Shown: piece after piece, positions 3,622 to 44,652 of the stretch
Layout of the letters: each line of letters opens with the position of its first letter
How positions within the stretch are numbered: the first letter of the stretch is position 1
DNA from: Obrimoposthia wandeli
Taxonomy: Eukaryota
NCBI GenBank assembly: GCA_977020255.1
Contig: CDROCS010005363.1
Location: forward strand, 1 to 64,000
Length of the DNA: 64,000 nucleotides
Reading direction: 5' to 3'
The notes under the pieces: model-generated
Database searches by the model: none
What the model saw: only the letters and a program-made list of their open reading frames with translations
What the model was told of the DNA's origin: nothing
Translations under genes and position numbers: made by a program

Positions 3622-3734
3622 AAGAATATAATTTAAATATTAGATCAGTGAGTAGAGAAAAATAGAGGGGGCATTGTAACAGCTCAAGGGCCATTGTGCT
3701 AAATGTGATCAGCCGCGATCATCTATATCCAGCG

Positions 3735-5528: not shown

Positions 5529-5680
5529 TCTGTTTTCCCTAAACTTGGTAACAATTATATAACGTAAAATTCTGTGAACATTGAAAAACTGTTTATATCT
5601 AAATACTGCGACTTAAGTTAAACCGAAAGCACTGACTTCTCTATTCGATTTACCCTTCTTTTCACTTGTAATATTCAATA

Positions 5681-10266: not shown

Positions 10267-10287
10267 ATCTAGATTTGCTGTTTTTAT

Positions 10288-11547: not shown

Positions 11548-11679
11548 CGTTCTCTTTGCATGTGGACGGATTTTAATAAATTGGCATTACGCTCAGTATA
11601 CAGTGTAGGAAAGCTTTGTTCATCCACTCTATTGCAACTACACTTAGGGCAATTGAAATCACAAGTTGTCCCGTCGTTT

Positions 11680-24430: not shown

Positions 24431-25126
24431 CTAGATAGGCAGCTTGTTATTTTGGCTGCCTATTTTTGAAATATTCATACATGTTAAACACATTGCAATA
24501 ATTACAGCTGAGGCTATAAGAACTTGCCATTCAACAACATCAAATTGGAAGGTATAGCGTAACAGGGCCAGTAGGCCGAAATAGCTCACGACCGATAACT
24601 GCAACCACGGCCCAATTTCAAAAGGAAGCCAGTTCACCTTTATATAATTCACTTTTATTTTTTTAGCTAAACATAAACTTATACTTGCAAACATAAGCAC
24701 TACTAGACCAACAATTAAAAAAGAAGCCCATACCCAATACTCTGGCCAATCAACTACCTGGGCAGACTTCGCAGGACCAGACCATAATGCATCCCAACTT
24801 ACGGCTAGAATCAAAGCAAAATTAACCATTAAGTTTGGTGCGGACTTATCGTTCATGGTCAGCAGCTCTTCTTTTACAAAATATGCTATAAATAGAAATG
24901 CGAGTATGCCTACTAGGGGTGTAATAAGTGGTTGTACACTAATACTAAAATACGCAATTAAATATCCTGCCATAGGAAATAACGTATGTGATAGCGTAAC
25001 GCCTAATAGCCATACGCTAATCGTTCTAACGTCGTTCATACTAGAGGCGCGAACAAATGTTGCTAGCGCAACATCAATACCAATGCCGAACCCCATTAAT
25101 ATGCAAGCTAAAAGTATATCAATCAT
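24431..25126 (-). CDS. MntP (manganese efflux)-like membrane protein
   Basis: Two half-repeats with Asp motifs GIGIDVALAT and AVSWDALWSG resembling MntP xDAxxV motifs; about 6-7 TM helices; ATGA overlap with the upstream cytochrome gene. Confidence 0.6.
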   Translation of the reverse strand: MIDILLACILMGFGIGIDVALATFVRASSMNDVRTISVWLLGVTLSHTLFPMAGYLIAYFSISVQPLITPLVGILAFLFIAYFVKEELLTMNDKSAPNLMVNFALILAVSWDALWSGPAKSAQVVDWPEYWVWASFLIVGLVVLMFASISLCLAKKIKVNYIKVNWLPFEIGPWLQLSVVSYFGLLALLRYTFQFDVVEWQVLIASAVIIAMCLTCMNISKIGSQNNKLPI

Positions 25127-26751
25127 GGAGTATTCCAGTTAAGACGAATATCCCAGTCATACCGATATTTTTCTTCAAGCGGCATTGTTTCTTCTACTTG
25201 TTTCAGTACATTTTTAGCGGGTATCAAAACAGCATCACGGCCAAAAATATAACTTTGTTCAGCTACAATTAATTTATACGCTTTATTTAATGCGAGCGCT
25301 CTTTCTTTAGAGGGTGTAATCAAAGAGTAAATAGAATCAAGTTTTTCAACTGCTTCTATATTTACTTGTCCATCTGCATGAAACCAGCGCTTCAACATTT
25401 CACTGTTTTGTCTGAATTCATCACCACCACCCACGCGTTGAAAATACGTAAGATACTCTCCTAACGGTTTTTCCTTCGGCTTCGTATTAGCAGAAGTATT
25501 TATATTAGGAACGTCTGCTATTTTTGTTAAATCAATATACCCCCAGCCGCTATTACCTTCAACTTTACGCGAAAAGGAAAAAATTTGATCAATAGTACTC
25601 CCTAACGTTTTATGACAGCCGTTGCAGAAAGCCATTTCTTGTTTATTTTGCTGACGCAGCTCACCCTGTTCGTTTTCAATATATCCATTAATAATCCAGC
25701 CAAAGCCATTATCTATGCCACGATCACCAATATTTATCGTTTGCGGAAGTTGCCCTAATATTTTTTCTTTCGCTTCAATATAATACGAGCTCTTTAAAGC
25801 CGAAATTGATTTAAATTTCGCTTTTTTCATATAGCGAACTTCCTTCATTCTTGGTGCGTTGTATATGCTTCCATCATCACCAATACCTATGTAGCGAACC
25901 GTATGTAAGAACTCCGTATCTTTTGGATACAGCATATACTCAATACGTATGTCATTTGCATCACCTAGATAAAAGTCCTTATTACTGCCTTGATGCTCTT
26001 TTCCAGATTGCTTAATTATTTGTTCTAGTAAGGCTAGATTTTGTAAATATAAGGTTTCCGAATACTCTCCTCCCTGTTCTCTGAATTTTTTTGGCAAGCG
26101 AATCATAGCATCGCCAGTAGATCCATTAGTGGGCCAAAAACTACTCGGTAAGGGTTTATAATTATAGGCAATCCAATGGGAACCATCTTTGGCGATACCG
26201 TTTACATGAAAAGCTTTTTTAGGATAGGCCAGATTCTTTATTTGAGGCATTTCACCCTTCCAGCTAGCATCCTTATTTAAACGCTGAATAAAAGGGGAAT
26301 AATTATCTTGTGAAACCCAGCTCATTATTTCCTTATCATTAATTCCAGCAATCTCTTTAGTACGGTCTTTAAATAGATTCTTCCAGCTGTTTTTCATACC
26401 CTCATCAGAAAATTCATAGTTGCCTTGCAAACTGGCGTCTTTAACAAAGTTAGGTCTTAAAGGGTCTGTATAGCTTTGATGGCAGATATAGCATGGATTT
26501 TTATCACCGTCCGTTTTGGTATAACACTGCGGCGGAATGACGGATTCTGGATTATAGATTTCGTTATGCTTTAAATACGCTAATGCAGGAATTGAATCCC
26601 GCGATAAATAACCTTCTTTAGGCTTTGTATTTTTAGAATTTTTATCTTTCGCTTGGTTATTAGTATCGGAGCAGGCACTAATAAAAAATAGCGAGGCGAT
26701 ACAAACAAGCAATAAATTAATGGAAAATAATCTAGTTTTCACAGATTTCAT
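25123..26751 (-). CDS. Di-haem c-type cytochrome lipoprotein, uncharacterised
   Basis: Lipobox FISAC; two CxxCH motifs (CYICH, CNGCH). Confidence 0.8.
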   Translation of the reverse strand: MKSVKTRLFSINLLLVCIASLFFISACSDTNNQAKDKNSKNTKPKEGYLSRDSIPALAYLKHNEIYNPESVIPPQCYTKTDGDKNPCYICHQSYTDPLRPNFVKDASLQGNYEFSDEGMKNSWKNLFKDRTKEIAGINDKEIMSWVSQDNYSPFIQRLNKDASWKGEMPQIKNLAYPKKAFHVNGIAKDGSHWIAYNYKPLPSSFWPTNGSTGDAMIRLPKKFREQGGEYSETLYLQNLALLEQIIKQSGKEHQGSNKDFYLGDANDIRIEYMLYPKDTEFLHTVRYIGIGDDGSIYNAPRMKEVRYMKKAKFKSISALKSSYYIEAKEKILGQLPQTINIGDRGIDNGFGWIINGYIENEQGELRQQNKQEMAFCNGCHKTLGSTIDQIFSFSRKVEGNSGWGYIDLTKIADVPNINTSANTKPKEKPLGEYLTYFQRVGGGDEFRQNSEMLKRWFHADGQVNIEAVEKLDSIYSLITPSKERALALNKAYKLIVAEQSYIFGRDAVLIPAKNVLKQVEETMPLEEKYRYDWDIRLNWNTP

Positions 26752-26865
26752 ACTTCTATCCAGTCATATTTTTTAATTACTACTGGTATAAAGCATTTAT
26801 ATGACAGAAATGTATCAATGATCTATTTATGTCATAAATCAAACTTGCCACTTATCAGCAGACAT

Positions 26866-26898
26866 AAAAAAAGGAAGAAGGTAAGCCTTCTTCCTTTT
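26866..26898 (-). terminator. Intrinsic terminator after the phoX-like gene
   Basis: GGAAGAAGG-taag-CCTTCTTCC hairpin with A7 on the left, i.e. U7 on the minus strand. Confidence 0.85.
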
Positions 26899-26934
26899 AA
26901 TGATCAGTAACTTAGCCAGCCAGTGGCTTAAGTT

Positions 26935-28836
26935 TTAACGAGGATCATACATCCATAATGTATTATTTTCTTGAAAGCCATCTTCACCTAAAAGAATACG
27001 GCCATCTTTCATGACGACAACGTTATCTGGCTGAGATAAGTTGTTTACATCACAACGCTCTGCGCCATCAAGTGAGCTGCGGTAAGTCGCGCCCATAATG
27101 ACTGGCTCGATACGAGTAAGGCTATAATCATTTTCGATTTTAGCGCGATAAACTCCACCGCAGTCTTTAATCCGACTGGATAGTTGCATATCACCTTCGT
27201 CATCAATCATCGTTTTATCTAGATCAGCAATAGCCATATACATATAGGCTGCAGTAACGGTTTCATCTGCAACCATATCAGCACCGGTTACGGCTTCTTT
27301 CACACGGTCTTGATGAATTGATATCCCTTCAAGCTTGCGCCATTCTGCAGTAGCCCCTAGCTGGCGGGCAGCTTGGCGAGATTCAAGGAAAGCTGAGCGA
27401 TCATCCATTGGCTGATCGGCAGTAATTTTACCACCTCCATTTGCCAGTGTTGGATACTTAGTACCTGCTGGGCGACCCGCGGTAACCCAAGCAGCCCACG
27501 CTTCAACATCCGCAACCGTCATATAGCTAGATTCACCAGCAACATACTGGTCCGTTCCAATGCCATCGAACTCATTAATCCAAACATCAATTTGAGTATT
27601 ATTACCCGCTGCTAATTCAACCCAAGTAACATCAAACCCTGTTACGGCTGGATCATTCAAACCTGCATCTTGCTGAAGCTTGGCTCCGAATAATGTACCG
27701 ACTGATAAATCTTCAGCCGTATCGGCTACAAACTTAAATAAGACTCCGCCGGTATCATCTTGTGATGCGTATACGGTTTTACCATCAGGCATAACGATTG
27801 AGTTTTCATGTTCATAACGACCGATAGTGAAATGCTTAACAGGTATAGGAGCTGCAGATTCTGGGTCTGTGATCTCTACGATATAACCATAATCATAAGG
27901 ATTGCTCGCATTACTTGATAGCGCCCACATACCTGCTAATAAAGCATCATCAGCAATTTGAGTAGGACTATTCCAACTAGGATTTGTTGTTGAATCAACT
28001 GAAGTATTAACAACCCATTCTTCTGAAGTTAAGGGGGTATTCCAAGGAGATACGGAACCAAAGCAATTGGCACCTGTACCATTAACAGCAGCGAAATCAA
28101 CCATCATTGCATCTAGAACGCCCCAATTACCTTGGGCATCTTTTTCAATATTCATGCGGCTCATACCACCTGGATATAACTCCCAGTTAGTAAATAGGTA
28201 ACCCTTACCAATACCTGTTGAAATAAAACCATTGAAATCAGGCATGTGATTTTCAAATATCTTAGTATCGCCTGCCAGGTTATAAATCGTACCTAACCCT
28301 TTTTCTAACTTACCTTCAAGGGTTGAAGCTGTTTGCCCCAACACTTTATATTGACCATAAGCTGTTTGAACTGTCTGACGTTCATAATCACTTTTAGGGA
28401 CAGGTAAATTAATCAGTGCCTTCGGTAAATTATTAAAATTAATTCCTTCTATAACACCTACTGTTCCTGTGTTATAGGCAACAGCATTGCCGTCAGTTTC
28501 AATATTACTATCAGCAGGGTGCTGGGCGTTGAAGAACAAATCGCCTCCTGCTGTTAAAAATATACCGGTAACCTCTGCACCCGCCGGCACTGTGGCAAGA
28601 CGAGTTAGACCTTCGATTGGATTGCCCATGGTTGATGCATCTTGCCCATCAGTACCATTAAGACCATCAGTACCATTAAGACCGACTAGTCCATCTATAC
28701 CAGAAGACCCTTCAGTACCATTGGTGCCAGGACTGCCATCATTACCATCCGAATCAGCGCCACAAGCCACTAACATAGAGGTTGTCATGGCTAGAAGCAC
28801 TGCCTTATGTAGAGCATTTTTCTTTAGGAGTTTCAT
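26935..28836 (-). CDS. phoX: PhoX-family (DUF839) alkaline phosphatase lipoprotein, circularly permuted, with collagen-like stalk
   Basis: Lipobox LVAC; motifs GAEVTG..FFNAQHP, NWE, NCFGSVSPWNTPLTSEE, GRYEHEN, YASQDD, RKLEG, QPDN, GED. Confidence 0.85.
   Translation of the reverse strand: MKLLKKNALHKAVLLAMTTSMLVACGADSDGNDGSPGTNGTEGSSGIDGLVGLNGTDGLNGTDGQDASTMGNPIEGLTRLATVPAGAEVTGIFLTAGGDLFFNAQHPADSNIETDGNAVAYNTGTVGVIEGINFNNLPKALINLPVPKSDYERQTVQTAYGQYKVLGQTASTLEGKLEKGLGTIYNLAGDTKIFENHMPDFNGFISTGIGKGYLFTNWELYPGGMSRMNIEKDAQGNWGVLDAMMVDFAAVNGTGANCFGSVSPWNTPLTSEEWVVNTSVDSTTNPSWNSPTQIADDALLAGMWALSSNASNPYDYGYIVEITDPESAAPIPVKHFTIGRYEHENSIVMPDGKTVYASQDDTGGVLFKFVADTAEDLSVGTLFGAKLQQDAGLNDPAVTGFDVTWVELAAGNNTQIDVWINEFDGIGTDQYVAGESSYMTVADVEAWAAWVTAGRPAGTKYPTLANGGGKITADQPMDDRSAFLESRQAARQLGATAEWRKLEGISIHQDRVKEAVTGADMVADETVTAAYMYMAIADLDKTMIDDEGDMQLSSRIKDCGGVYRAKIENDYSLTRIEPVIMGATYRSSLDGAERCDVNNLSQPDNVVVMKDGRILLGEDGFQENNTLWMYDPR
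28639..28746 (-). repeat. Collagen-like (Gly-X-Y)12 segment including an exact 18-bp tandem duplication
   Basis: GNDGSPGTNGTEGSSGIDGLVGLNGTDGLNGTDGQD; ccatcagtaccattaaga x2 at 28646-28681. Confidence 0.9.
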
Positions 28837-28897
28837 CACGATATCTCTCTCGATATTTTTTAATAAATCATTGGAGAGCACAGGCTAGGTTATAAAA

Positions 28898-28981: not shown

Positions 28982-29662
28982 TCAATAACGCCTTACAAAG
29001 ATGACAACCCTTCGGTTACTCTCGCGCTGTTGATCTAACGATGCGGTTTCTAATTTTTCTTTCGGTCGACTATCAGCATATCCGGCCGCTTTTAAGCGCT
29101 CTTTCTCAATCCCTTGAGCTAATAAGTATCTCACTACGTTCGTCGCTCGAGCTGAAGAAAGCTCCCAGTTAGAAGGAAATTTTTCAGTATGAATAGGCAC
29201 GTCATCAGTATGTCCTTCAACTTCAACCATATGTGTTTTATGGCTAGTCTCACGAATTACCTGAGTGACTTCTTTTAATGTTGAGATCGCATTTTGTTTA
29301 ATATCTGCAGAGCCAGACTGATAGAGTGCTACGTTAGCAAATTCAACCTTAACGCCTTTAGTATCTAAAGTAACGGAGACTTGATCTTGTAAATTATTTT
29401 GTTCAATTAATTCTTCTAGCCCATCTTTAATATCAGTGAAAGGCGTTGGTGGAGCTTCACCTGTCATCATTTCAGACAGCCCTTCCTTAAGTGCTTCAAC
29501 CTTGCCTTGATTTAAATCTGAAACAGAAAGAATCATGACGAAGAATGCCAGTAACAAGGTGATCGCATCAGAGTAAGTAATTAACCATGAGCTGGAAGCA
29601 TCCTCAAAATTAGGGCGGCGTCGTCTTAAGCTTCTGTGTTTATTTGATACGGACTCAGACAT
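28982..29662 (-). CDS. motB: MotB/PomB-family stator subunit with OmpA-like peptidoglycan-binding domain
   Basis: WLITYSDAITLLLAFFV TM with conserved Asp; EGHTD, SNWELSSARA, NRRV. Confidence 0.92.
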   Translation of the reverse strand: MSESVSNKHRSLRRRRPNFEDASSSWLITYSDAITLLLAFFVMILSVSDLNQGKVEALKEGLSEMMTGEAPPTPFTDIKDGLEELIEQNNLQDQVSVTLDTKGVKVEFANVALYQSGSADIKQNAISTLKEVTQVIRETSHKTHMVEVEGHTDDVPIHTEKFPSNWELSSARATNVVRYLLAQGIEKERLKAAGYADSRPKEKLETASLDQQRESNRRVVIFVRRY

Positions 29663-30465
29663 TAAAGATCTTCTTCTATCGGCTGATAACGCGCACTTGG
29701 CTTAAGATAAGCATTCAATCGATCTTGCATAAATAATGCATCTCGCTTCTCTGCTAATAATACAAAGCCTTCAACAATCATTTGATCACGGAAATATAAA
29801 GATTCTTGCTTTTCGGTTACCTGATTTGCCGCAGGTTTAAAAATAATATTCGCTAATACAACACCGTATAAAGTTGTAATTAATGCCAGTGCTAAGCCTT
29901 TACCAAGGGCGGCCATATCGCCATTCATATTATCCAACATAATAACCAAGCCAATAATGGTACCGACCATGCCAAAGCCAGGAGCATAAACCGCCATGGT
30001 ATTTAATACTTTTGATTCAATCGTCATTCGTTGCCAGAAGGCATCCATATCGTCTGTTAAAATAGTACGTATATCATGATTTTTATAACCACTGCTTAAC
30101 AACTCCATACCATGAGCTAAAAATGGATCTCTTCGTTCTTTTTCAGTTAAAGAAGACTCTAATCCTGCGATGCCCTGTTGACGATAAATCTGGCCCCACT
30201 CAATAAAGCGCTCTACATGTCCCCTTAAATATTTCGAACTCGTAGGCGCATGAAAAAAGGTATCAAATAGCGCTTTAATTGCTGTTAGAACATCCCTCGT
30301 TGTATAACTAATCAAAGAAGCTGCAAACGTACTACCAGCGACTAAAGCAAAACTGGATAAGCTAATAAACATTAGATAATTATTTGTGCTCGAAACTATT
30401 GCATAAATAAAGAGACTGATTGCAACGGTAATACCTACGAGCGTGCTAAACGAAAATCGATTCAT
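29662..30465 (-). CDS. motA: MotA/PomA-family stator subunit
   Basis: R-QQGIAGL-E torque pair, APGFGMVGTIIGL, ALITTLYG..LAN..FKP; 1-nt overlap with motB. Confidence 0.92.
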   Translation of the reverse strand: MNRFSFSTLVGITVAISLFIYAIVSSTNNYLMFISLSSFALVAGSTFAASLISYTTRDVLTAIKALFDTFFHAPTSSKYLRGHVERFIEWGQIYRQQGIAGLESSLTEKERRDPFLAHGMELLSSGYKNHDIRTILTDDMDAFWQRMTIESKVLNTMAVYAPGFGMVGTIIGLVIMLDNMNGDMAALGKGLALALITTLYGVVLANIIFKPAANQVTEKQESLYFRDQMIVEGFVLLAEKRDALFMQDRLNAYLKPSARYQPIEEDL

Positions 30466-30474
30466 ACTAGATCC

Positions 30475-32415
30475 TTAGCTTGGATTCGCAACAGCTATCA
30501 ATTCTTCCATGGAGAAACGGCCTGCTTTTAATACTTCACGCATTTTAGCAACCACTTGATTTCGAGCTTGTTCAGTTTGCTCTTGCGCGGCTTGGCCTTC
30601 TTGTATCTTTAATTCGGTAATAACAGAAGATCGTAATTTCACCGGTAATCCGCTTAATATATGTCGCTTAAATTCTGTTGCAGTATTGCATAAGGAAAGT
30701 GCCATCACGGTACGGTCTATATCTCTAAGCTCATTAGCAATAATACGTTCTGGCGTTCGCATTAAATCGGCATAAGTATAATAAACCTGTCGTAAACGAT
30801 AATAGGTTTCAGGCTTATCCGATTTTAAGGTTTTTAGTAGTCGAGTTTCTTCTCCGCTACTCATAGTATCTAGCATATTAATTAGTACCGACAAACCGTT
30901 CGCTGATACATTTTCAAAGCTCGGAACATTCAATGATTTTTGTGCAAGCCGATCAGCTACATCTTTAAACGTTGATACTGGAAGCGTCTCAAACTCGCCT
31001 AATTCATAAGCTACTGCGGATTGTTCATGCCCTTCTAATCGCTGAACTAAACCCGCACCTCTTTGCGCTGACATCTGTGAAAATACCAATGCTTTAATTC
31101 GAGTTTCTTCTTCCTTAATTAAATAAAGAACTTGGGAGTCATTTAATTTTTCCAAGAATGCAAACGGCGCATTACTACTGTCATCATCACCTAAAGCTTT
31201 TAACATTTCATGCCGAATATTATTTAAACTATTAATTCTTTGATCATCATCTAAAGGTTCTTGCTCTATTCGATTCGATAATGCTTCCGAATCAGCACTA
31301 GCAATTTTTGGACAAAGGCTACGAAACAACCCCTTTCCTAATACGTCATACAATGCAGCTACATTCTGACTGTTACCACTATTTAATTGTTCAGTAATAC
31401 GTTGCTGAAATAATTGCGGCTGCCCTAGCCCAATGGTTACCAATTCTTGTCGCATTTCATTCAACTGTCGGCGCTTATCATTAAAGCTATTATGCGAGGT
31501 ATCTTCAGAATTGCCGATAGCTGCCATTTCAACGGCTGCTGGCACAGTAAAGTTATCGAAATTATCACCTCTACGTTGATTCTCTTTTAGGCTATCACTT
31601 AAACGTTTATTGAATAAGTATAAGGCGAAGAGTAAAAGCAACATCATAAAGCCAAAACAGGCTAACATAATCCAGCCTTGGTATTGCTGCCACCAATCAA
31701 GTACTACATCGGTCTTTTCTTCTTTCTTGAATACAGTTCGTACGATTTTTAATGAATCACCTCGTAACTCATCTAACCGCGCTTTCCTAGTTATTAGGTT
31801 ACGAATAAACTCGACCTGCTGATCGCTTAAAATCTTGTCCAATACGATAGTAATCGTAAGTTTATTAATAGAATTTCGATAACCTAACGTTTTTTCTTTT
31901 ATCTTTTCTATTTGTTTTTCCGCTTCTTTACGTAATTTTTCCGCATAACCTAATGCTTGCTGACGCTCGTTTTCTAGCTGCTGAACTCGTCCTTTTAACG
32001 CGTTTACTTCTGCACTATTATCTTCAAAAATGGGTAAGTCACTGGTGGGAAGTCCCGGTAAAGTTTCTTCAACTTCTTTTGATCGATTACCAAACGATGC
32101 AGGAATTGGTTGAGAAGTGAAGATAGGCCTTTCAGGAATGCTATCTCTTCTTGAACTTGATTCTTCTTTAACAATCGTACGGGTTTTCTTTAACTCTGCT
32201 TCAACATGAATAATGAAACGATTATTACCTAGATACGCTTGTAAGTCCCGATTTAAGCGTGCTTCCATTTCATCTTTAAAGCGAACTTCTTCGATTTCAT
32301 CTTTTTTAGCCGGTACTTCAAATGTTTTTCCAGTCTCCGCATAGGTATTAACGGCTGGATAAATAACTGAACATATAAGGCACAGCTTGATGATACTTTT
32401 TATCAATAATTTCAT
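30475..32415 (-). CDS. FliF(ring-building motif 3)-TM-FliG fusion protein
   Basis: Signal peptide; RBM3-like halves (aa ~47-85 and ~183-229 with RGD); TM aa 248-268; FliG-like PFAFL, EEETRIKALVF, YYTYADL and C-terminal helix EQARNQVVAKMREVLKAGRF. Confidence 0.8.
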   Translation of the reverse strand: MKLLIKSIIKLCLICSVIYPAVNTYAETGKTFEVPAKKDEIEEVRFKDEMEARLNRDLQAYLGNNRFIIHVEAELKKTRTIVKEESSSRRDSIPERPIFTSQPIPASFGNRSKEVEETLPGLPTSDLPIFEDNSAEVNALKGRVQQLENERQQALGYAEKLRKEAEKQIEKIKEKTLGYRNSINKLTITIVLDKILSDQQVEFIRNLITRKARLDELRGDSLKIVRTVFKKEEKTDVVLDWWQQYQGWIMLACFGFMMLLLLFALYLFNKRLSDSLKENQRRGDNFDNFTVPAAVEMAAIGNSEDTSHNSFNDKRRQLNEMRQELVTIGLGQPQLFQQRITEQLNSGNSQNVAALYDVLGKGLFRSLCPKIASADSEALSNRIEQEPLDDDQRINSLNNIRHEMLKALGDDDSSNAPFAFLEKLNDSQVLYLIKEEETRIKALVFSQMSAQRGAGLVQRLEGHEQSAVAYELGEFETLPVSTFKDVADRLAQKSLNVPSFENVSANGLSVLINMLDTMSSGEETRLLKTLKSDKPETYYRLRQVYYTYADLMRTPERIIANELRDIDRTVMALSLCNTATEFKRHILSGLPVKLRSSVITELKIQEGQAAQEQTEQARNQVVAKMREVLKAGRFSMEELIAVANPS

Positions 32416-32427
32416 GTTTATTCCCCC

Positions 32428-33150
32428 CTACTTCAACCGTGCCAGACTGGTTTTAACTTGTTCCATATCAGGATCGATTACAAGTGCTTGCTGCCAGCTA
32501 GATTTCGCCTCAGCACTCAGTCCCATCTTATAATAAATACTGCCTTTTAAGGCATGTGCTTGAGCCGAATCAGGAACCAATTCGAGCGCTTTATTAGTTT
32601 CATCTAATGACTTCCAGTATTGTTTTTTATAGAACAAAGACTGGGCACTAAAAATATATTTAGTCGATGCTTGGAAGTCTTGAATTTTCTTTTGTTCAAC
32701 TAAGTCACTACGCTCATCAAACTCTTCATGATGCATCTCTGCTTTATCATCATTTAGACTAGCGAGCACTTGTTTATTTTTCTCTGCAATCTCTGCGGCA
32801 CTTTTTTGGAGAGTCTCTTGCATCGTACTGTGTTCAGTACCAGGAACTGCCGGTAACTTCATACTGAAGCTAACGTCACTATCACCCGCATCTAATGTCA
32901 TTAAGACATCAAATCCTGGTCCATAACGATGAATGTGCATGAGTCCATGATTCTTTTTCGCTAGGTCCGCCACTTGTTTACGTTTCTCTATTATTTCTAG
33001 AGAAATTTCTGCGCTTGCTTCTGTACTCTCTTCACCTATTCCCTGCAGGTCTGGTTGATCGCCACCATACTGGGTAAGGGTTCGATTTGTTCTTTCCATA
33101 GTGCAAGCACTAAGGAAAGAAACTAACAATACTACCATTAAATATTTCAT
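32428..33150 (-). CDS. TPR-containing lipoprotein
   Basis: Lipobox LSAC; C-terminal TPRs (ALELVPDSAQAHALKGSIYYKMG...WQQALVIDP). Confidence 0.85.
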   Translation of the reverse strand: MKYLMVVLLVSFLSACTMERTNRTLTQYGGDQPDLQGIGEESTEASAEISLEIIEKRKQVADLAKKNHGLMHIHRYGPGFDVLMTLDAGDSDVSFSMKLPAVPGTEHSTMQETLQKSAAEIAEKNKQVLASLNDDKAEMHHEEFDERSDLVEQKKIQDFQASTKYIFSAQSLFYKKQYWKSLDETNKALELVPDSAQAHALKGSIYYKMGLSAEAKSSWQQALVIDPDMEQVKTSLARLK

Positions 33151-33159
33151 GTTCCGTCC

Positions 33160-34227
33160 TTAGAAGCGCATGCCAAGTGTTAGGTCATAACTTGCAGCAC
33201 CAAAGGTACCTATCTCTTCGAATCCCGCATCACTTTTCCACTTCACATCTGTTTCTTGCATATACACGACACCAAAGTCCATAAATCCGTCCTTGAAGAA
33301 TGGAAATTCGAAACCAAAACGAAAGATCAAACTATTTGCATCATTAAAGAATGCCTGTCCAATACCTAGATATACATTGCTATCGATGACACCATCCAAT
33401 GCAGGTATATCAGCAATGATACGACCTTCTAAGTTATAGCCACTAAGGTCGAATAATTCTTCCGATGAAGTATTGGTAAAATATTCAAAGCCTAGGGTAT
33501 ATTCAATACCTTCATTTAATTCAGTACTCTCACGCCTGCGTAGACCAAATACAGTTGCGCCGCTAAGCTCAGCTTCTCCTCCACCGGCGGTACTTTTTCG
33601 CGTTCCGTTAACGCCCCAAGCTCCGACTATAAATTCATATTGAACTTTATCAAAATTTTCTTCTTCCGCTTCTTGTGTTGTTTTCTTCGAGTACTCTTTA
33701 AGCCAAAGTAATTCGTTATTTTTACCATCAACGAGTCGTAGATTAATTGTAAATTTATTTTGATGAACTGAAGAACTCCAAAACATAAATGCATCAGCAC
33801 GTACTTGCTTAGATAATGCTCTTAATTGTTGGTTGCTTTCAGCAGCCTGAGATATTTTCAGTTCATCAGCCGCCATCATTACTTTCGTTGTACGGCATTC
33901 AATACATTGAATCACTTCAAAACGACCGTTTGCGATGAGTCGACGCATGAGTTTATTTTCGATCATTTGATGAACTTGCTTAGGAATTAAGCGATGAAGT
34001 CGATCGCCATTATGATAAAGAGCAATACGCTGAATCCCTTCATCAAGGTCCATAAGTTCCTCTAGAAGCAATGTTTTATCATCGTCTAGTAATTGGCCAA
34101 AACCGGTATAGAGTGTCGGGGGTGGCTCAGCCATTTGAGGTACTACTTGCTCTGCCGCTTGCACGTAATTTAGTGACAGTAATAAACTGATGCTTACTAG
34201 CTTTATAATTTTGACAACCATCAACAT
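33160..34227 (-). CDS. Secreted protein with CsgG/FlgO-like periplasmic domain and C-terminal outer-membrane beta-barrel
   Basis: Signal peptide; LIANGRFEVI...ADAF...INLRLVDGKNNELLW domain containing CIEC; amphipathic strands ending YDLTLGMRF (terminal Phe). Confidence 0.65.
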   Translation of the reverse strand: MLMVVKIIKLVSISLLLSLNYVQAAEQVVPQMAEPPPTLYTGFGQLLDDDKTLLLEELMDLDEGIQRIALYHNGDRLHRLIPKQVHQMIENKLMRRLIANGRFEVIQCIECRTTKVMMAADELKISQAAESNQQLRALSKQVRADAFMFWSSSVHQNKFTINLRLVDGKNNELLWLKEYSKKTTQEAEEENFDKVQYEFIVGAWGVNGTRKSTAGGGEAELSGATVFGLRRRESTELNEGIEYTLGFEYFTNTSSEELFDLSGYNLEGRIIADIPALDGVIDSNVYLGIGQAFFNDANSLIFRFGFEFPFFKDGFMDFGVVYMQETDVKWKSDAGFEEIGTFGAASYDLTLGMRF

Positions 34228-34326
34228 TCCCTAACCTTGACATCTTTTCTAGATTCCTCATGTCAGCATAGTTCAGATATGCAGGTTAGATGAAACTTTG
34301 CTATGCTTTTTTGTAATGGAGTACTT

Positions 34327-34674
34327 ATGAAATCAATGATTCAACTAGCTTTTCTATTTCTATTCAGTCAATTAGTAAGTCAGCCCCTTTTTGCTGAAGA
34401 GAATAAAGTAAAGAATAATCTAAAGATCATTTCTCTCTATCAGATTGAAGATGATACAAATGCAGGGTTTGACTTTTTCACGTCACAAAAAATACATAAA
34501 TGCGGTGGTAAACTGTCCAATCGCTTTCGATCTTATAGCGATCATAAAGCTGTCGCTGAACGAAAGTTCAAGATCGCACTAGCAGCATTAAATTTTCAGT
34601 ATAAAGTGAGTATAAAGTCCTTGGGCTGTGAAGGCCGCTCAATGCTAATCGACCACATTGGCATCAGCCTATAA
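34327..34674 (+). CDS. Small secreted hypothetical protein
   Basis: Signal peptide (..SQPLFA), two Cys; divergent from the motor operon. Confidence 0.7.
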   Translation: MKSMIQLAFLFLFSQLVSQPLFAEENKVKNNLKIISLYQIEDDTNAGFDFFTSQKIHKCGGKLSNRFRSYSDHKAVAERKFKIALAALNFQYKVSIKSLGCEGRSMLIDHIGISL

Positions 34675-34698
34675 ACTTCAGACATTTCGAGCAGGCAT

Positions 34699-34735
34699 AA
34701 AAAAGCCGAACTTATGTCACCATAAGTTCGGCTTT
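34699..34735. terminator. Terminator hairpin between convergent genes
   Basis: AAAGCCGAACTTATG-tcac-CATAAGTTCGGCTTT 15-bp perfect stem. Confidence 0.85.
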
Positions 34736-34804
34736 CTAAAATGATTAAACTGTTAAGGCTAGATAAATTAGCACGTAGCCAGTTAACAAATCATCAGTTA
34801 GATC

Positions 34805-36331
34805 TTAATCAATTTGCTTAGCAGCAATTTTAGCTTTCCATTCTTGCGGGCCAGTGATGTGCACTGAAGAACCACGACAATCTACGGCAACCGTTACGGG
34901 CATATCAACAACGTCAAATTCGTAGATCGCTTCCATACCTAAGTCAGCAAAACCAACAACTTCAGCGCCTTTAATCGCTTGTGATACTAAGTAAGCAGCA
35001 CCACCCACAGCCATTAAATAAACCGCTTCGTTATCACGAATCGCTTCAATCGCCATTGGGCCACGCTCGGCTTTACCGATCATGCCTAAAAGGCCAGTTT
35101 CTTCTAATACTGTACGAGTAAACTTATCCATACGGGTCGCCGTTGTAGGGCCTGCAGGACCGACTACTTCGTCACGTACTGGGTCAACAGGACCTACGTA
35201 ATAGATAAAACGGCCTTTTAGATCAACCGGCAATTCTTCGCCGTTATTGATCATATCAACCATGCGCTTGTGCGCCGCATCACGACCAGTAAGCATTTTG
35301 CCGGACAATAATACGGTTTCACCGGGTAGCCAATCTTTAACCATCTCAGGAGTGACTTCGTTCAGATTAACGCGACGAACACCTTCACCCACTTCCCAAG
35401 TAATGTCAGGCCAGTCTTCGATTTTAGGCACGGGCAATACGGCTGGACCGGAACCGTCTAATTCGAAATGAACGTGGCGAGTAGCCGCACAGTTTGGAAT
35501 AATGGCAACCGGCTTGTTGGCAGCATGTGTCGGGAAATCGGCTACTTTAATATCAACAACCGTAGTAAGACCGCCAAGGCCTTGTGCGCCGATACCTAGT
35601 TTGTTCACTTTATCGAACAATTCTAGACGCAGCTCTTCCGCACGAGTTTGTGCGCCACGAGCTTGTAGCTCTTGAATATTAACCGGCTCTAATAATGATT
35701 CTTTAGCGATCATCATCGCTTTTTCAGCCGTACCGCCGATGCCTATACCAAGCATGCCTGGTGGACACCAACCAGCACCCATTTTTGGAATTTGCTCTAA
35801 TACCCAATCAACAACAGAATCCGAAGGGTTCAACATAGCAAATTTAGACTTGGCTTCTGAACCGCCGCCTTTTGCCGCAACGTGAACGTCTACGGTATTA
35901 CCCTGAACTAATTTAACGTGGACAATCGCTGGGGTATTATCTTTAGTATTGCTACGCGCGCCATCAGGATCAGCCAAAATAGAAGCACGTAATACGTTAT
36001 CTGGATTCAGATAAGCGCGACGAACACCTTCGTTGGCGATGTCTTCGATATTCATCGTGGCATCTTCAAAACGCACATCCATGCCGATTTCTAAAAATAC
36101 GGTAACAATACCGGTATCTTGGCAAATTGGACGGTGGCCTTGGGCACACATACGAGAGTTAATCAGAATCTGAGCCATGGCATCTTTAGCCGCTTTCGAT
36201 TCTTCTTTTAGATAGGCTTCATGAACAGCGTCGATGAAATCTTTTGGGTGATAATACGAAATATATTGCAGTGCGTCCGCGATGCTCTCGATCAGATCAT
36301 CTTGGCGAACAACTGTGACGGCATTAGCCAT
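34805..36331 (-). CDS. fumA: Fumarate hydratase class I (Fe-S)
   Basis: RPICQDTG, KGGGSE, GAGWCPPG, AIIPNCAATRH, GPTTATRMD. Confidence 0.95.
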   Translation of the reverse strand: MANAVTVVRQDDLIESIADALQYISYYHPKDFIDAVHEAYLKEESKAAKDAMAQILINSRMCAQGHRPICQDTGIVTVFLEIGMDVRFEDATMNIEDIANEGVRRAYLNPDNVLRASILADPDGARSNTKDNTPAIVHVKLVQGNTVDVHVAAKGGGSEAKSKFAMLNPSDSVVDWVLEQIPKMGAGWCPPGMLGIGIGGTAEKAMMIAKESLLEPVNIQELQARGAQTRAEELRLELFDKVNKLGIGAQGLGGLTTVVDIKVADFPTHAANKPVAIIPNCAATRHVHFELDGSGPAVLPVPKIEDWPDITWEVGEGVRRVNLNEVTPEMVKDWLPGETVLLSGKMLTGRDAAHKRMVDMINNGEELPVDLKGRFIYYVGPVDPVRDEVVGPAGPTTATRMDKFTRTVLEETGLLGMIGKAERGPMAIEAIRDNEAVYLMAVGGAAYLVSQAIKGAEVVGFADLGMEAIYEFDVVDMPVTVAVDCRGSSVHITGPQEWKAKIAAKQID

Positions 36332-37336: not shown

Positions 37337-37879
37337 ATGAAAACCCCATTTCTCATCACTACGATATTAATTTTCAGCGGCAGCTTGCTGAATGTCTTTG
37401 TGATAGCCAAAGATAATCCTTATTATGCGAACGACTTAGATGCCGCCGTTCAGGATGCCGAAAAAAACCCTAGCGATATGAAGTTTGTCGGTAACCGTTG
37501 GTATAACCGCAGTACTTCAAAAAGTTTTGATTTCCCAAAACTAATGAACACAGAGATGTCTTCTGAAATCGTTGATGGTGCGCTCGACTCTACTGCCGCG
37601 GGCCCTGGAGACGTTGCTCCTGTACGAACTTCGCCTTTGGAACTGAATGCGGAAGATGTTATTGCTAATAAGCAAGACGACTCTGAGTTAGACTTTTTAG
37701 CCGATACTAAAACCACAGAAATTGATCTTTCAATTCAACCTCCTGCAGATATCGAGGAGCTTGCACCTTCGATATTCACGATTGACAAAATAGAATATAG
37801 TAGTGGAAACTATTCCGGTAGCGCTACAAATATTCGCGGTGAGTCTAGCTCTAGAGCGTATATCACACCTGAACCTTAA
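37337..37879 (+). CDS. Secreted hypothetical protein (paralog A)
   Basis: Signal peptide; shares the YY..D...A...A.K.P...YNRST..S.D.P.L.N.EM motif with the next gene. Confidence 0.8.
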   Translation: MKTPFLITTILIFSGSLLNVFVIAKDNPYYANDLDAAVQDAEKNPSDMKFVGNRWYNRSTSKSFDFPKLMNTEMSSEIVDGALDSTAAGPGDVAPVRTSPLELNAEDVIANKQDDSELDFLADTKTTEIDLSIQPPADIEELAPSIFTIDKIEYSSGNYSGSATNIRGESSSRAYITPEP

Positions 37880-37894
37880 TACTATGGTGATGTC

Positions 37895-38323
37895 ATGATG
37901 AAAGCCCCACTCAAGGCTCTAGCCTTAACCCTTGCAAGCCTAACTCCAGCATTGAGTTGGGCTGTAAACCCGCATGATGAATACTATACCGATGATATCT
38001 TCACTGCGATAAATGAAGCTAAGAAGCGCCCACATCATTACGACTACAGTAACGCTAAACGCTATAATCGTTCCACTACGCAAAGCCTTGATATTCCTAG
38101 ACTTTTAAACAAAGAGATGGGAGTTACAAGCATTGAAAGCCAGGATGAAAATAGTATTTCAGCTGACGATACTCCCGTAGGTAAACACCAACAGAAGCAA
38201 TATCAATTAAGTGAAGATGATCTGGCTGGCAGCCAAGCTTTACCTGTCCGCCCTATCGCACCGACTATTGGCAATTCCAATGTGCAATCACCCAATATTA
38301 CGACGACTATCATAGCTCGCTGA
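37895..38323 (+). CDS. Secreted hypothetical protein (paralog B)
   Basis: Signal peptide (..ALSWA); same N-terminal motif as 37337-37879. Confidence 0.8.
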   Translation: MMKAPLKALALTLASLTPALSWAVNPHDEYYTDDIFTAINEAKKRPHHYDYSNAKRYNRSTTQSLDIPRLLNKEMGVTSIESQDENSISADDTPVGKHQQKQYQLSEDDLAGSQALPVRPIAPTIGNSNVQSPNITTTIIAR

Positions 38324-38362
38324 ATATTTACAAAGGTTTTACAAGCCGTTATCAAGTTTGGT

Positions 38363-39262
38363 TTAGCCGGACATTTTCAAGCGTATTAACTGTCGAATCT
38401 TCTGGCCCATTTGTAATAACAACCTGTCTTTCAACCATGACTTTTTAGCGTTCTCAGAGAGATAGTGAGAGTACTCGTTCATTAATTCATGGCTTCTATC
38501 TAATAAATCAAAGCAATCCAAAGAATAATAATCAGGGTGCTGCTCGAACTTTTCAATTAACTGACAGATTAATTCCACAATACCTTCCAGATCAGATAAT
38601 GATTGTCCATTTTCAACCAATTCTCTTAACATCCAAGCCATCATTGCTAGCCCAACATGCATATCTTCCCAGTAGCGGAATGGTTTATTAGCGTGCTGGT
38701 GACCATCAAAATCAAATATTTGTGACCCTAGTACGGGGACTTTATTGAAACTCACACCTGCATGTGGAATATCTTGTACAAAAGGCGCAGCCAAGGTTTC
38801 TTTCGGCACTACTCCTAAGCTGCCAGCGAGTAGATAAAGACAGCGTAATTGGCCATCGTCATCCTTAGCCACGACATACATACGATCCAAATCGTTAGGT
38901 AAAAGCATCACATAGCCTTTCTGCCCATCTAAGCAATAGCCATTATTAGAGGGTGAAATACACGTTTCCATATCCCAAGGTTTTTTAATACCTTTTTCTG
39001 AAACACAAAAAGCGGCAAGTTCGTCAGCCGGACAGCTCGGATCTAAGCAGCGAATAGCATTTTGATAGCCCGCAAGAAAGGCCATACCAGGCGTTGCCGC
39101 TTGTGCGCCTAGAGATAAGGAATTATACGCAGATGAATATTGTTGAAAGCCAGTTTTTAGATGCTTACGAAACGTTTCTAAATTTGAAAATTTCAGCTGG
39201 GGGGATTCCAAGGCGTGCTGCAATACTGTCAGCACACCTGGTTTATTCGCTAGACAAAACAA
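38363..39262 (-). CDS. Acyl-CoA dehydrogenase-like protein (short form)
   Basis: AAFCVSE, LDGQKGYV, HAGVSF patterns resemble the acyl-CoA dehydrogenase middle domain. Confidence 0.55.
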   Translation of the reverse strand: MFCLANKPGVLTVLQHALESPQLKFSNLETFRKHLKTGFQQYSSAYNSLSLGAQAATPGMAFLAGYQNAIRCLDPSCPADELAAFCVSEKGIKKPWDMETCISPSNNGYCLDGQKGYVMLLPNDLDRMYVVAKDDDGQLRCLYLLAGSLGVVPKETLAAPFVQDIPHAGVSFNKVPVLGSQIFDFDGHQHANKPFRYWEDMHVGLAMMAWMLRELVENGQSLSDLEGIVELICQLIEKFEQHPDYYSLDCFDLLDRSHELMNEYSHYLSENAKKSWLKDRLLLQMGQKIRQLIRLKMSG

Positions 39263-39266
39263 TGAA

Positions 39267-40136
39267 CTAAAGAGTGCCTGTCATTGCATTTTGCATACGA
39301 TCTAAACGAATTTGAATATCTTCGATTTCCAATTTCATTTCATTAAATTGAGATTCAACTTCTGCCATAGAGCTATTCAATTTCTTACGAGTTGCATCAA
39401 TAGAACGAATCGACTGTTCATTGTTTCCAATACGCGTTTCCGTTGCCGCTGGCAATCCGTTCACAGATGATTTAACTTCCGCAAGCTTCGCTTCTAATGC
39501 TAGCTGGCTATTGGCTAAGCTAGTTTTCAACGCGGCAATACTCTTTTTATTACCAGAAATATTATTATTCGCAGAAACGACCTTTTTATCGATCCCTGCC
39601 GCTGTTTTACTATTTCCTGCCGCTGTTTTACTAATCGCTGTCGCTTTTTTATCTACTTTAGCCACTAAGGCTTTGACACCAGAAATTGATTTACTATTTT
39701 TATCAATGTTAGGTTTGTTAGTTTTATTAGTCAGATCCCAAAGCTTACGAATTTCTTTGGCGTTATCTTTTAATAAGATCTTAAGTGCACCAGCCGATAG
39801 GTTTGAATTCTCATCGGAGGCTGATAACTTGTCATTTAAAGATTCCAAGTTGCTAGAGTGGCCATTTAATATGACTTCTGCATTTTTTAACTGTGCATTA
39901 GCTTCTTGTAATTGCATGAATAAGAAACCCGCGAAACCTCCCATTGCTAAGCTTAAGAGCAGCGCAATGATAGCCACTGTTTGCTTAGCTGCTGGCGCTA
40001 CTAACTCAGGGGCTGAGGCATTAGTTTTAGCCGCACGTTGCGCAGCCAAACGACGTTGTTGCAACTGTTTTTGACGCATCGCCATGTCGTCTTGTGATGC
40101 TTGCATCTTTGGTATGGATTCTTGATCGTTTGACAT
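39267..40136 (-). CDS. Single-TM coiled-coil protein
   Basis: TM IIALLLSLAMGGFAGFLF followed by heptad-rich helix; internal 18-bp direct repeat at 39595-39633. Confidence 0.75.
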   Translation of the reverse strand: MSNDQESIPKMQASQDDMAMRQKQLQQRRLAAQRAAKTNASAPELVAPAAKQTVAIIALLLSLAMGGFAGFLFMQLQEANAQLKNAEVILNGHSSNLESLNDKLSASDENSNLSAGALKILLKDNAKEIRKLWDLTNKTNKPNIDKNSKSISGVKALVAKVDKKATAISKTAAGNSKTAAGIDKKVVSANNNISGNKKSIAALKTSLANSQLALEAKLAEVKSSVNGLPAATETRIGNNEQSIRSIDATRKKLNSSMAEVESQFNEMKLEIEDIQIRLDRMQNAMTGTL

Positions 40137-43701: not shown

Positions 43702-43712
43702 CGATCAAGTCC

Positions 43713-44582
43713 TTATTTAATGGTATGGTTAACGACAAAACGACGATTACCACGCTGAATTTCCAAGCGTGCCTGACCACTATTAGTCACTTGCTCTAAT
43801 AGCATTTGGTCATCATCTAAATTGCCCAATGTCTGTCCATTGACAGATAAAATAATATCTCCTGGCTGTAAACCTAATTGAGTCAACATAGAACCAGAAT
43901 TTGAAACTTTATAGCCCGAGCCATTTTCAGACGTTTCTAATCCAAGCTGCTTTAATGCGCCAGCCGGATTATTCGACACTTCATCTCGTAACAAGGCCAC
44001 CGCATCTGATGCGTTACGAACCTTTTTAAAACGATCTTTTAAACTACCCCGGCTTTGTGCTCTTCGTTGTGCCGCCGTTGGCTTAGTTGACTTTTGTATA
44101 CCTTGTTTACGACCAAGATCAAACTTTAAAGTCTCTAGTTTGCCATTACTATCCAAGATCACTTTATCTTGATGAACGGCCGCCAACTTAGTTCGCCCTT
44201 GAACAACATCCCCTACTCGGTAGTTCTCACCTGCTCCGCCTTTAGGCGCAATAATCGCGCTGGAATTTTCTGTCTTGCTGGCCGCCATGACGCCCAATAG
44301 CTCTAGGCGTAATCGTGTTTTCGGTGCATTAACTTCTTTAGGTACTTCAGCCAACTCAACCGCAGCATCACCAAAAATATGCAAATCGGCAATACTACTG
44401 TTTTGCGCTACAACTGCTCCGCCTTTGGCTTTGCTAGGCTCTGATAATACCAAGGTTTTTGGCGATAATATCATCCAAGTAAAAATAGCTAACTGACTAG
44501 CGATTAATACGGTAAATATTAACTTGCCGAGCACAAGGCTCACTCTCTGCCAAGGCAAAATAACGATTGTTTGTTCAGTCAC
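43713..44582 (-). CDS. gspC: Type II secretion protein GspC with PDZ domain
   Basis: N-terminal TM, APKTRLRLELLGV HR domain, GLQPGDIILSVNG PDZ. Confidence 0.9.
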   Translation of the reverse strand: MTEQTIVILPWQRVSLVLGKLIFTVLIASQLAIFTWMILSPKTLVLSEPSKAKGGAVVAQNSSIADLHIFGDAAVELAEVPKEVNAPKTRLRLELLGVMAASKTENSSAIIAPKGGAGENYRVGDVVQGRTKLAAVHQDKVILDSNGKLETLKFDLGRKQGIQKSTKPTAAQRRAQSRGSLKDRFKKVRNASDAVALLRDEVSNNPAGALKQLGLETSENGSGYKVSNSGSMLTQLGLQPGDIILSVNGQTLGNLDDDQMLLEQVTNSGQARLEIQRGNRRFVVNHTIK

Positions 44583-44652
44583 GTTTCACCTCTAACAAAT
44601 TCCCTATTCAACACATTACTACCTGTCGCTTCATGTTCTTTTGCGCTTAATT

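Follow-up and report, generated by a model that had tools for sequence, protein, structure and literature searches.

The 64,000 nucleotides analysed here (positions 1 to 64,000 of contig CDROCS010005363.1 in the Obrimoposthia wandeli assembly GCA_977020255.1, hereafter the window) carry on their minus strand, at 28982-34227, a module of five genes in which a rotor-stator core of the flagellar type appears in a new architecture and a new context. Its central product is a natural fusion of part of FliF to FliG, which is encoded together with a MotA, a MotB, a tetratricopeptide repeat (TPR) lipoprotein and a beta-barrel protein of the outer membrane (OM). We lean, by a modest degree, towards the view that the module is a self-contained rotor-stator machine that has no rod, is driven by ions and is coupled to the OM. 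A more specific version of this proposal, in which the module is an autonomous trans-envelope rotary machine whose MotAB spins a ring of fusion proteins and passes torque to the OM or cell surface through the TPR lipoprotein and the barrel protein, is one that we would neither back nor bet against. A preliminary description of this DNA had listed five co-oriented genes separated by gaps of 9, 12, 9 and -1 nucleotides, and the same arrangement is present in the list of open reading frames (ORFs):

33160-34227, minus strand: OM protein, ORF of 355 amino acids
32428-33150, minus strand: TPR lipoprotein, ORF of 240 amino acids
30475-32415, minus strand: FliF-FliG fusion, the candidate rotor subunit, ORF of 646 amino acids
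29662-30465, minus strand: MotA, ORF of 267 amino acids
28982-29662, minus strand: MotB, ORF of 226 amino acids, whose start overlaps the motA stop by 1 nucleotide

The identities that had been proposed for the products, namely an OM barrel, a TPR lipoprotein, a FliF/FliG hybrid, MotA and MotB, are borne out by Pfam, AlphaFold and Foldseek. These ORFs are real genes and not chance ORFs, given that more than 20 related loci contain them intact, with ratios of nonsynonymous to synonymous substitution (dN/dS) of 0.02-0.07. The module is flanked by a fumarase gene and a PhoX gene. Its lack of flagellar neighbours, which the preliminary description had also pointed out, holds on inspection of the flanks and throughout the window, as Pfam scans that covered most ORFs of 120 amino acids or more across the 64 kb found no Flh, Fli or Flg genes and no flagellin. 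The rest of the window yielded in these scans only housekeeping genes, two GGDEF genes, a thrombospondin-type-3 (TSP3) repeat protein and the type II secretion system genes gspD, gspC and gspN.

The evidence for a rotor lies in the fusion protein. It begins with a signal peptide, followed by an alpha-beta-beta-alpha-beta domain (residues 40-227), a long transmembrane (TM) helix, a short disordered linker and a helical cytoplasmic region (residues 306-643). Pfam recognises YscJ_FliF_C at residues 58-229, FliG_M at 427-497 and FliG_C at 529-635. The AlphaFold2 model, which was built from a 40-sequence alignment and which, like the other AlphaFold models used here, is that of a monomer, has a predicted local distance difference test score (pLDDT) of 84. 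Three parts of the protein can be assigned to the following positions:

31735-32298, minus strand: RBM3-like ring-building domain (residues ~40-227), ending in a FliF-like R-G-D...F motif
31606-31683, minus strand: the single TM helix, corresponding to FliF TM2 (residues ~245-270), placed by the AlphaFold2 helix at 237-283, a scan for hydrophobic segments and the alignment
30487-31500, minus strand: FliG-like N, M and C domains (residues ~306-643), recognised by PDB sequence matches, AlphaFold2 and Foldseek

A sequence search of the PDB matched residues 43-277 to residues 234-485 of Salmonella FliF. By structure, Foldseek matched the periplasmic domain to FliF RBM3 or S-ring entries (8t8p, 6sd1, 7cg7 and Vibrio 8z4g) and the cytoplasmic region, over about 315 columns, to full-length FliG (3hjl, 8umx_B and 9n49_G, with Salmonella C-ring subunits among them). 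The hybrid proposed in the preliminary description is therefore confirmed as a fusion, with a correction to its composition: according to these matches and models, a full FliG with N, M and C domains is joined to only RBM3 and TM2 of FliF. TM1, RBM1, RBM2 and the beta-collar of FliF are missing, and a signal peptide stands in place of TM1. In FliF, TM1, RBM1 and RBM2 surround the export gate. The position of the beta-collar is taken by a variable insert (residues 84-173) that consists of a disordered stretch with an LPG motif and a long helix. The insert of Oceanospirillaceae is long and helical, that of Fibrobacterota is short, and the sole invariant feature of the insert is the LPG motif (LPGLP in the window).

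The residues of the FliG portion were mapped against Escherichia coli and Bacillus FliG in 12 members of the module family. Only the first Glu of the FliM-binding EHPQR motif is left in all 12, and the window reads E436-E-T-R...E at this site. The Gly-Gly hinge of FliG has become Asn, Asp or Ser followed by Gly, with one exception (D-S in locus L013). The window carries C576, K593, T600, E601 and an Ala at the positions equivalent to K264, R281, D288, D289 and R297 of E. coli FliG; the R281 equivalent is Lys or Arg in 10 of the 12 members, the residues at the D288/D289 positions vary among the other members, and the equivalents of K264 and R297 are not kept. The fusion scores 52.4 bits against the FliG model TIGR00207 (cut-off 226.7), and its FliG part forms the C-terminal half of a membrane protein, unlike the free cytoplasmic FliG of about 330-340 residues. 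The rotor side of the module has lost precisely those parts through which FliF and FliG are connected to export, rod and switching, and has gained dedicated OM partners.

One of these partners, the OM protein, comprises a signal peptide, a periplasmic alpha/beta domain (residues ~60-182) and a C-terminal eight-strand beta-barrel (residues ~194-355) that ends in the outer-membrane protein signature G-x-R-F. Its AlphaFold2 model was made from a 22-sequence alignment and gives the barrel a pLDDT of about 90. Foldseek matches for the barrel are NspA, OmpA, OmpX, Ail and OmpW, and those for the N-terminal domain are TolB-N, LpoB, FlgT (3w1e), GNA1162 and PelC. No significant family is assigned by Pfam, which reports only a weak FlgT_M match (E = 0.0017, 19 bits, cut-off 31.2), and no PDB sequence was retrieved with a profile of the protein. 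The pair C108-x-x-C111 is kept in gammaproteobacterial-type members and not in Fibrobacterota, and homologues of the OM protein adjoin the fusion gene in all module lineages. The modelled fold is that of an anchor-type barrel, not a channel. Driving an OM transporter or secretin had been suggested as one output of the motor, and such a role is unlikely for this protein because its predicted barrel has only eight strands and is of the anchor type.

The second partner, the TPR lipoprotein, has the lipobox L-S-A-C16 and belongs to Pfam TPR families. Because a Thr occupies the +2 position, it is probably sorted to the OM. A small conserved N-terminal domain is followed in this protein by an acidic, helical linker and by C-terminal TPRs (residues ~160-232). 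Conservation of the lipobox Cys and of the C-terminal TPR block extends from Oleispira to Fibrobacterota and to loci L029 and L014.

On the stator side, MotA falls into the Pfam family MotA_ExbB, has flagellar MotA and PomA as its best PDB matches over the full length, and is a flagellar-type (PomA/MotP-like) A subunit with a full cytoplasmic torque domain. Its R95, E103 and both prolines align with R90, E98, P173 and P222 of the E. coli protein. MotB has Asp32 within its TM segment (motif W-L-I-T-Y-S-D), and Pfam finds both the plug (MotB_plug, 53.6 bits) and the OmpA-like peptidoglycan-binding domain (68.9 bits). For MotA the best NCBIfam model is MotP (166.5 bits, cut-off 394), and the MotP, PomA and MotA models all remain below their cut-offs; for MotB the best model is MotD, at 187.6 bits against 283. 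Scores for tolQ (16.8 bits, cut-off 221) and exbB (17.1 bits, cut-off 135) are negligible. Judging from these residues and domains, the stator side looks fully functional and gives no sign of inactivity.

We also placed eight module MotAs in a maximum-likelihood tree with nine flagellar references (E. coli, Vibrio parahaemolyticus PomA, Aeromonas, Burkholderia, Azospirillum, Bacillus, Listeria, Thermomicrobium and Granulicella). A single clade with 99/99 support unites the module MotAs of Oceanospirillaceae, Fibrobacterota and locus L031. This clade lies beside a PomA-like group, and the MotA of L029 is a long branch near it. MotA of the window is 35-40% identical to the module MotAs of Fibrobacterota and L031, compared to 18-28% for the nine flagellar references.

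An exhaustive HMMER search for the fusion family yielded 1434 representatives at E<=1e-3, the weaker of which may include ordinary FliG, and 273 at E<=1e-10. More than 130 of the best 150 (clusters at 50% identity) are 520-790 amino acids long and combine a signal peptide, a periplasmic domain, a TM helix and FliG. The family comprises several deep groups, the largest of which has 58 representatives with Fibrobacterota names. The module is spread across at least two phyla. A metagenome scan with a narrower alignment gave 10 loci, and a plasmid collection searched with the fusion returned only a Bacillus fliG. All five genes occur together in Oceanospirillaceae (Oleispira, Thalassolituus and Bermanella, with L020), in L013, in the Fibrobacterota loci L027 and L028, in L029 and in L031; the fusion with both OM partners is found in Oceanospirillaceae, L013, L015, L022-L024, L027/L028, L029 and L031. 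The five-gene neighbourhood, on whose conservation the preliminary description had made its proposal depend, is conserved across genera and phyla and travels in four gene orders. Loci that are distant from the window are arranged as follows:

L027 and L028 (Fibrobacterota): fusion, OM protein, TPR protein, MotA, MotB
L013: OM protein, TPR protein, fusion, MotA (split in two ORFs), MotB, then a TraF_2-like barrel
L029: MotA, MotB, OM protein, TPR protein, second FliF_C-like protein, second TPR protein, fusion
L031: order as in the window, beside TraG-like and integrase genes
L015 and L022-L024: OM protein, TPR protein and fusion only, with no motAB within the available flank
L014 and L025: TPR protein and fusion
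L030: fusion, then fn3 and FG-GAP proteins

No flagellar gene is present in any module flank that was examined. The conserved core of the module is the fusion with its two OM partners, to which a dedicated motAB is linked in most lineages.

Some of these loci have features of their own. In L013, motA (10150-10939) consists of two overlapping ORFs of 131 and 138 amino acids, which represents either a frameshift or an assembly error, and immediately upstream of the module is a gene for an IS1595-type transposase. The L031 module is bracketed by TraG-like and phage-type integrase genes (1002-2810 and 15828-16905), and its sequence context suggests that it may reside on an integrative element. Neighbours of this kind, integrase and TraG-like genes in L031 or a transposase gene in L013, fit a transferable and self-sufficient unit. 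A second FliF_C/RBM3-like protein in which no FliG domain was detected is encoded in L029 (483 amino acids, 5420-7715) and in L025 (430 amino acids, 2660-3952), and hints at two-ring versions of the machine in lineages of these types. Large proteins with Ig/PKD repeats, or other surface-type proteins, trail the module in L015, L030 and L031, which hints faintly at a load on the cell surface.

The nearest relatives of the window's proteins are found in Oleispira (90-96% identity), Thalassolituus (~50%) and Bermanella (37%), and we take the window itself to be part of an Oleispira chromosome. A scan of genome contigs with a single protein gave matches in Oleispira and Thalassolituus genomes only. 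The five genes are intact and syntenic in nine genome loci, and likewise in T. hydrocarboniclasticus (L010), Bermanella (L011) and the metagenome loci L016-L020. From Oleispira to Bermanella, the module sits in the same fumarase neighbourhood. The low dN/dS values given above apply to all five genes and come from pairwise comparisons with Oleispira loci in which synonymous divergence is unsaturated, synonymous sites being saturated in most comparisons. All five genes are under strong purifying selection. Relative to L001, synonymous divergence across 28982-36331 is about 1.3-1.6 for the five module genes, 0.2 for fumarase and 0.9 for phoX. The gap between fumarase and the module could reflect strong codon bias in the fumarase gene or a different recombination history of the module.

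The closest relative with a published genome and proteome is informative on both the flagellum and expression. In Oleispira antarctica RB-8 the orthologues are OLEAN_C05040-C05080, which are annotated as 'FliG-like protein' and 'Flagellar MotA/MotB protein'. The flagellar and chemotaxis array of RB-8 lies wholly at OLEAN_C12070-C12510 (PMC3759055), so the module does not contain this genome's only fliF, fliG and mot genes. A separate complete flagellar set, whose presence the preliminary description had left to be determined, is therefore found elsewhere in this close relative, at a distance from the module that we estimate from the regulon position and locus-tag numbering to be about 0.8 Mb. 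The authors of the genome paper (Kube et al.) took 'MotAB and PomAB' to be two stator systems of the flagellum (PMC3759055). In the shotgun proteome of RB-8, Table S2 includes the FliG-like protein R4YK22 (641 amino acids), with mean spectral counts of ~5.5, 1.6, 4.3 and 3.2 across four conditions; these values were matched by accession and protein length, as the columns for locus and annotation do not line up with those for accession and data near OLEAN_C0500x-C0509x (PMC7318663). The OM protein, R4YKB8, is likewise among the expressed proteins of that table, from which MotA, MotB and the lipoprotein are absent (PMC7318663). The strong purifying selection, together with the detection of two products by mass spectrometry in RB-8, answers the concern raised earlier that the genes might be unexpressed or decaying.

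The machine that we favour would operate as follows. Stator units of the MotA5B2 type, anchored to peptidoglycan by the OmpA-like domain of MotB, would conduct H+ or Na+ through D32 and exert force on the FliG_C domains of a ring that the FliF(RBM3)-TM-FliG fusion would form. FliF and FliG share a single polypeptide here, so their ratio would be fixed at 1:1. Such a ring would house no export gate, having no RBM1 or RBM2, and would hold no rod, having no beta-collar; because EHPQR is absent, it would presumably also engage no FliM/FliN switch. Owing to these three absences it would be a one-direction rotor without a filament. Its periplasmic face, which bears the LPG motif and the lineage-variable insert, would engage the TPR lipoprotein at the OM and the TolB-N/FlgT-like domain of the barrel protein, and the ion-driven torque would be delivered to the outer membrane or the cell surface. 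We infer that the ring forms and rotates, that it contacts the OM pair, and that it is independent of the flagellum.

Several observations weigh against this proposal. All hosts that could be identified by name (Oleispira, Thalassolituus and Bermanella) are polar flagellates, and flagella are predicted for most Fibrobacterota (PMC4704652). In the torque helix, the acidic pair D288/D289 is retained only in part, reading T/E in the window and S/G in Fibrobacterota. The MotA tree is thinly sampled, with nine flagellar references, none of them an Oleispira PomA. Finally, L015 and L022-L024 have no adjacent motAB, and L014 and L025 have only the TPR protein and the fusion; because several lineages are without an adjacent motAB, the stator may be shared or optional in them.

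The module could instead be an accessory of the flagellum, in which case its MotAB would be a second polar stator, and the fusion, the TPR lipoprotein and the OM protein would constitute an adaptor or scaffold ring that surrounds or lies within the basal body, similar to the FlgT/FlgO/FlgP, MotXY or PflAB structures of Vibrio and Campylobacter. We consider this unlikely, yet plausible enough to be the explanation that most deserves attention besides our own. The flagellation of the named hosts and of most Fibrobacterota is what it would lead one to expect, and Kube et al. interpreted both stator systems of RB-8 as flagellar (PMC3759055). The FlgT_M/TolB-N fold in the periplasmic domain of the OM protein is consistent with such a role as well, and it is conceivable in principle that an RBM3 domain co-assembles with FliF. 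The periplasmic scaffolds of flagella are usually made of TPR proteins and OM lipoproteins. However, the module carries its own FliG, which would be needless for a mere alternative stator; Shewanella and Pseudomonas, which have dual stators, have one FliG. Moreover, the module never adjoins flagellar genes in the loci examined, its stators form a clade distinct from the flagellar references, its FliM-binding motif is lost, and its proteins score under every NCBIfam flagellar equivalog cut-off.

A ring that is held by the OM pair might also not rotate at all, and might serve as a platform where stators dock, park or sense, for example as a mechanosensor or a regulator of ion flow. A tether anchored in the OM through the TPR lipoprotein would make free rotation mechanically awkward, the torque-helix charges are only partly kept, and some lineages retain the OM protein, TPR protein and fusion without a linked motAB. 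Nevertheless, the Arg and Glu of MotA and the Asp and plug of MotB are kept under strong purifying selection, as expected of an active torque generator, and OM proteins are mobile within the membrane, so a tether need not block rotation. We regard a static platform as improbable. Defence had been listed in the preliminary description among the possible outputs, and a Zorya-type anti-phage system would use a MotAB-like motor to sense perturbation of the envelope. PADLOC does report weak ZorA matches (E ~1e-3) and family-level ZorB matches (E down to 3e-21), which amount to generic similarity to MotB, but MotA, at 267 amino acids, is without the long ZorA tail, and the locus has no ZorC/D/E-like genes or effector-like neighbours. 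The module also occupies a fixed housekeeping setting in three genera (fumarase, DUF2846, superoxide dismutase and Maf) and not a variable defence island, and we find a defensive function very hard to credit. Still less probable is that the genes are left over from a second flagellar system, decaying and now without a function. The module does represent only a fragment of a flagellar gene set, and motA of L013 is split in two, but the five ORFs are intact and constrained in the many loci cited above, the set is conserved across phyla, and two of its proteins are in the RB-8 proteome. The data on selection and conservation come close to refuting this explanation.

The self-contained rotor-stator machine that we favour has counterparts, in part, in several known systems. 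With the flagellar motor's core the module shares RBM3, TM2, the N, M and C domains of FliG, a flagellar-type MotA, and a MotB with Asp32, plug and OmpA-like domain, and presumably also the torque interface between MotA and FliG_C. It differs from this core in that FliF and FliG form one polypeptide without TM1, RBM1, RBM2, beta-collar or EHPQR, in having dedicated OM partners and no genes for an export gate, rod, hook, filament or L/P-rings, and in its separate locus and separate stator clade. Engineered FliF-FliG fusions of Salmonella and Vibrio are reported to assemble MS/S-rings (PMC6079021, PMC11481574) and have the same covalent 1:1 link. They are full-length laboratory constructs within a complete flagellum, whereas the module fusion is natural, is truncated N-terminally to RBM3, and belongs to a large family. 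Dual-stator polar flagella, such as that of Shewanella with PomAB and MotAB and, in the published reading, that of O. antarctica (PMC3759055), likewise involve a second motAB in a marine polar flagellate that has PomAB. Unlike these, the motAB of the module belongs, with translational coupling, to an operon that also encodes a FliG-containing protein of its own and two OM proteins, and this five-gene set is conserved across phyla.

The OM partners call to mind the scaffolds that surround some flagellar motors, namely the FlgT/FlgO/FlgP H-ring and MotXY T-ring of Vibrio, the PflA/PflB spokes of Campylobacter and Helicobacter, and the FlgP disk. These also employ OM lipoproteins, TPRs and a TolB-N/FlgT_M-type fold, and the parts that they share with the module are placed between the level of the stator and the outer membrane. 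However, the module proteins have no significant sequence membership in these scaffold families, the OM protein has an integral eight-strand barrel, and the OM genes are linked to a private rotor and stator and not to a flagellar cluster. The logic of an inner-membrane ion motor that works with OM barrels, lipoproteins and TPR proteins is also that of ExbBD-TonB, TolQRA-TolB-Pal-CpoB, GldLM of the type IX secretion system, AglRQS-Glt and ZorAB, and TolB-N-like and OmpA-like domains recur in these non-flagellar 5:2 motors and in the module. None of them uses a FliG/FliF-type ring. Their A subunits are of the compact 'GIT' type, in contrast to the flagellar 'FIT' type of the module, which has the torque domain and plug (PMC12505986). 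Compared to Tol-Pal and TonB-ExbBD, the module has no TolA- or TonB-like gene, and its B subunit is MotB-like with a plug.

The surroundings of the module include one further gene that may be associated with it:

34303-34674, plus strand: possible sixth, accessory gene, encoding a predicted secreted, Cys-containing protein of 123 amino acids, divergent from the OM-protein gene

By tblastn, this gene accompanies the module in Oleispira, Thalassolituus-like loci, Bermanella and L020 (37-84% identity) and was not found in T. hydrocarboniclasticus L010 or in the distant lineages. Its product has no Pfam family, and synteny makes it possible that the gene is part of the system. Scans of the upstream region for sigma-54 and sigma-70 patterns gave nothing informative, and inspection of this region by eye revealed no convincing sigma-28 site.

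Downstream of motB (24431-28881, minus strand) are genes for a PhoX-like phosphatase with a collagen-like repeat (648 amino acids), a 542-amino-acid protein that belongs to family Aq_1262 in the precomputed Pfam matches of L010 and L026, and a 231-amino-acid protein with no family. These genes are syntenic in Oleispira and Thalassolituus; they are probably outside the module because Bermanella has pyrG-eno in their place. Four genes for proteins of 142-299 amino acids without a Pfam family lie between DUF2846 and sodB (37337-40136), and genes of similar size that are likewise without Pfam families occupy a like position in the Thalassolituus, Bermanella and Oleispira loci (L010, L011 and L026). 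Elsewhere in the window, two tandem GGDEF-domain genes (11521-13592, plus strand) interrupt an otherwise housekeeping stretch, and the TSP3-repeat protein (14920-17418, minus strand) is a calcium-binding, surface-type protein of 832 amino acids. The type II secretion genes gspD (the secretin), gspC and gspN lie at 41797-45420 on the minus strand, 7.5 kb upstream of the module, and a secretin gene is found at the equivalent relative position in L010 and L026. We rejected these genes as a component of the system, given that synteny is the sole link, that the distance is 7.5 kb, and that unrelated genes intervene.

The chance that the module represents a categorically new machine is, in our estimate, about even. 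To our knowledge, the non-flagellar relatives of the stator that have been described (ExbBD, TolQR, GldLM, AglRQS and ZorAB) all work without FliG. We found no paper that describes this family or module, the only pertinent reports being those on engineered fusions and on the genome and proteome of O. antarctica, although a description in a subscription journal is possible. A recent classification of stators regards all those with the torque domain ('FIT') as flagellar (PMC12505986). Two corrections of annotation follow: the 'second flagellar stator, MotAB' of RB-8 (OLEAN_C05070/80) belongs to the module, as do many metagenome entries of about 600 amino acids that are labelled 'flagellar motor switch protein FliG'. 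Even if the module proves to be a flagellar accessory, it would constitute a new kind of basal-body component. If the proposal of a self-contained machine is true, however, the module would be the first case in which the FliG-MotA torque interface is employed outside the flagellum and would define a new class of ion-driven envelope machine. A minimal pair made of five proteins, with a 1:1 ratio of FliF to FliG and no switch, would then be useful for structural work and for single-molecule measurements of torque. Such a machine would also bear on the question of whether rotor and stator can exist as a module separate from the type III export apparatus, and would provide a living model of a minimal rotor-stator pair that is relevant to the evolution of the flagellar motor.

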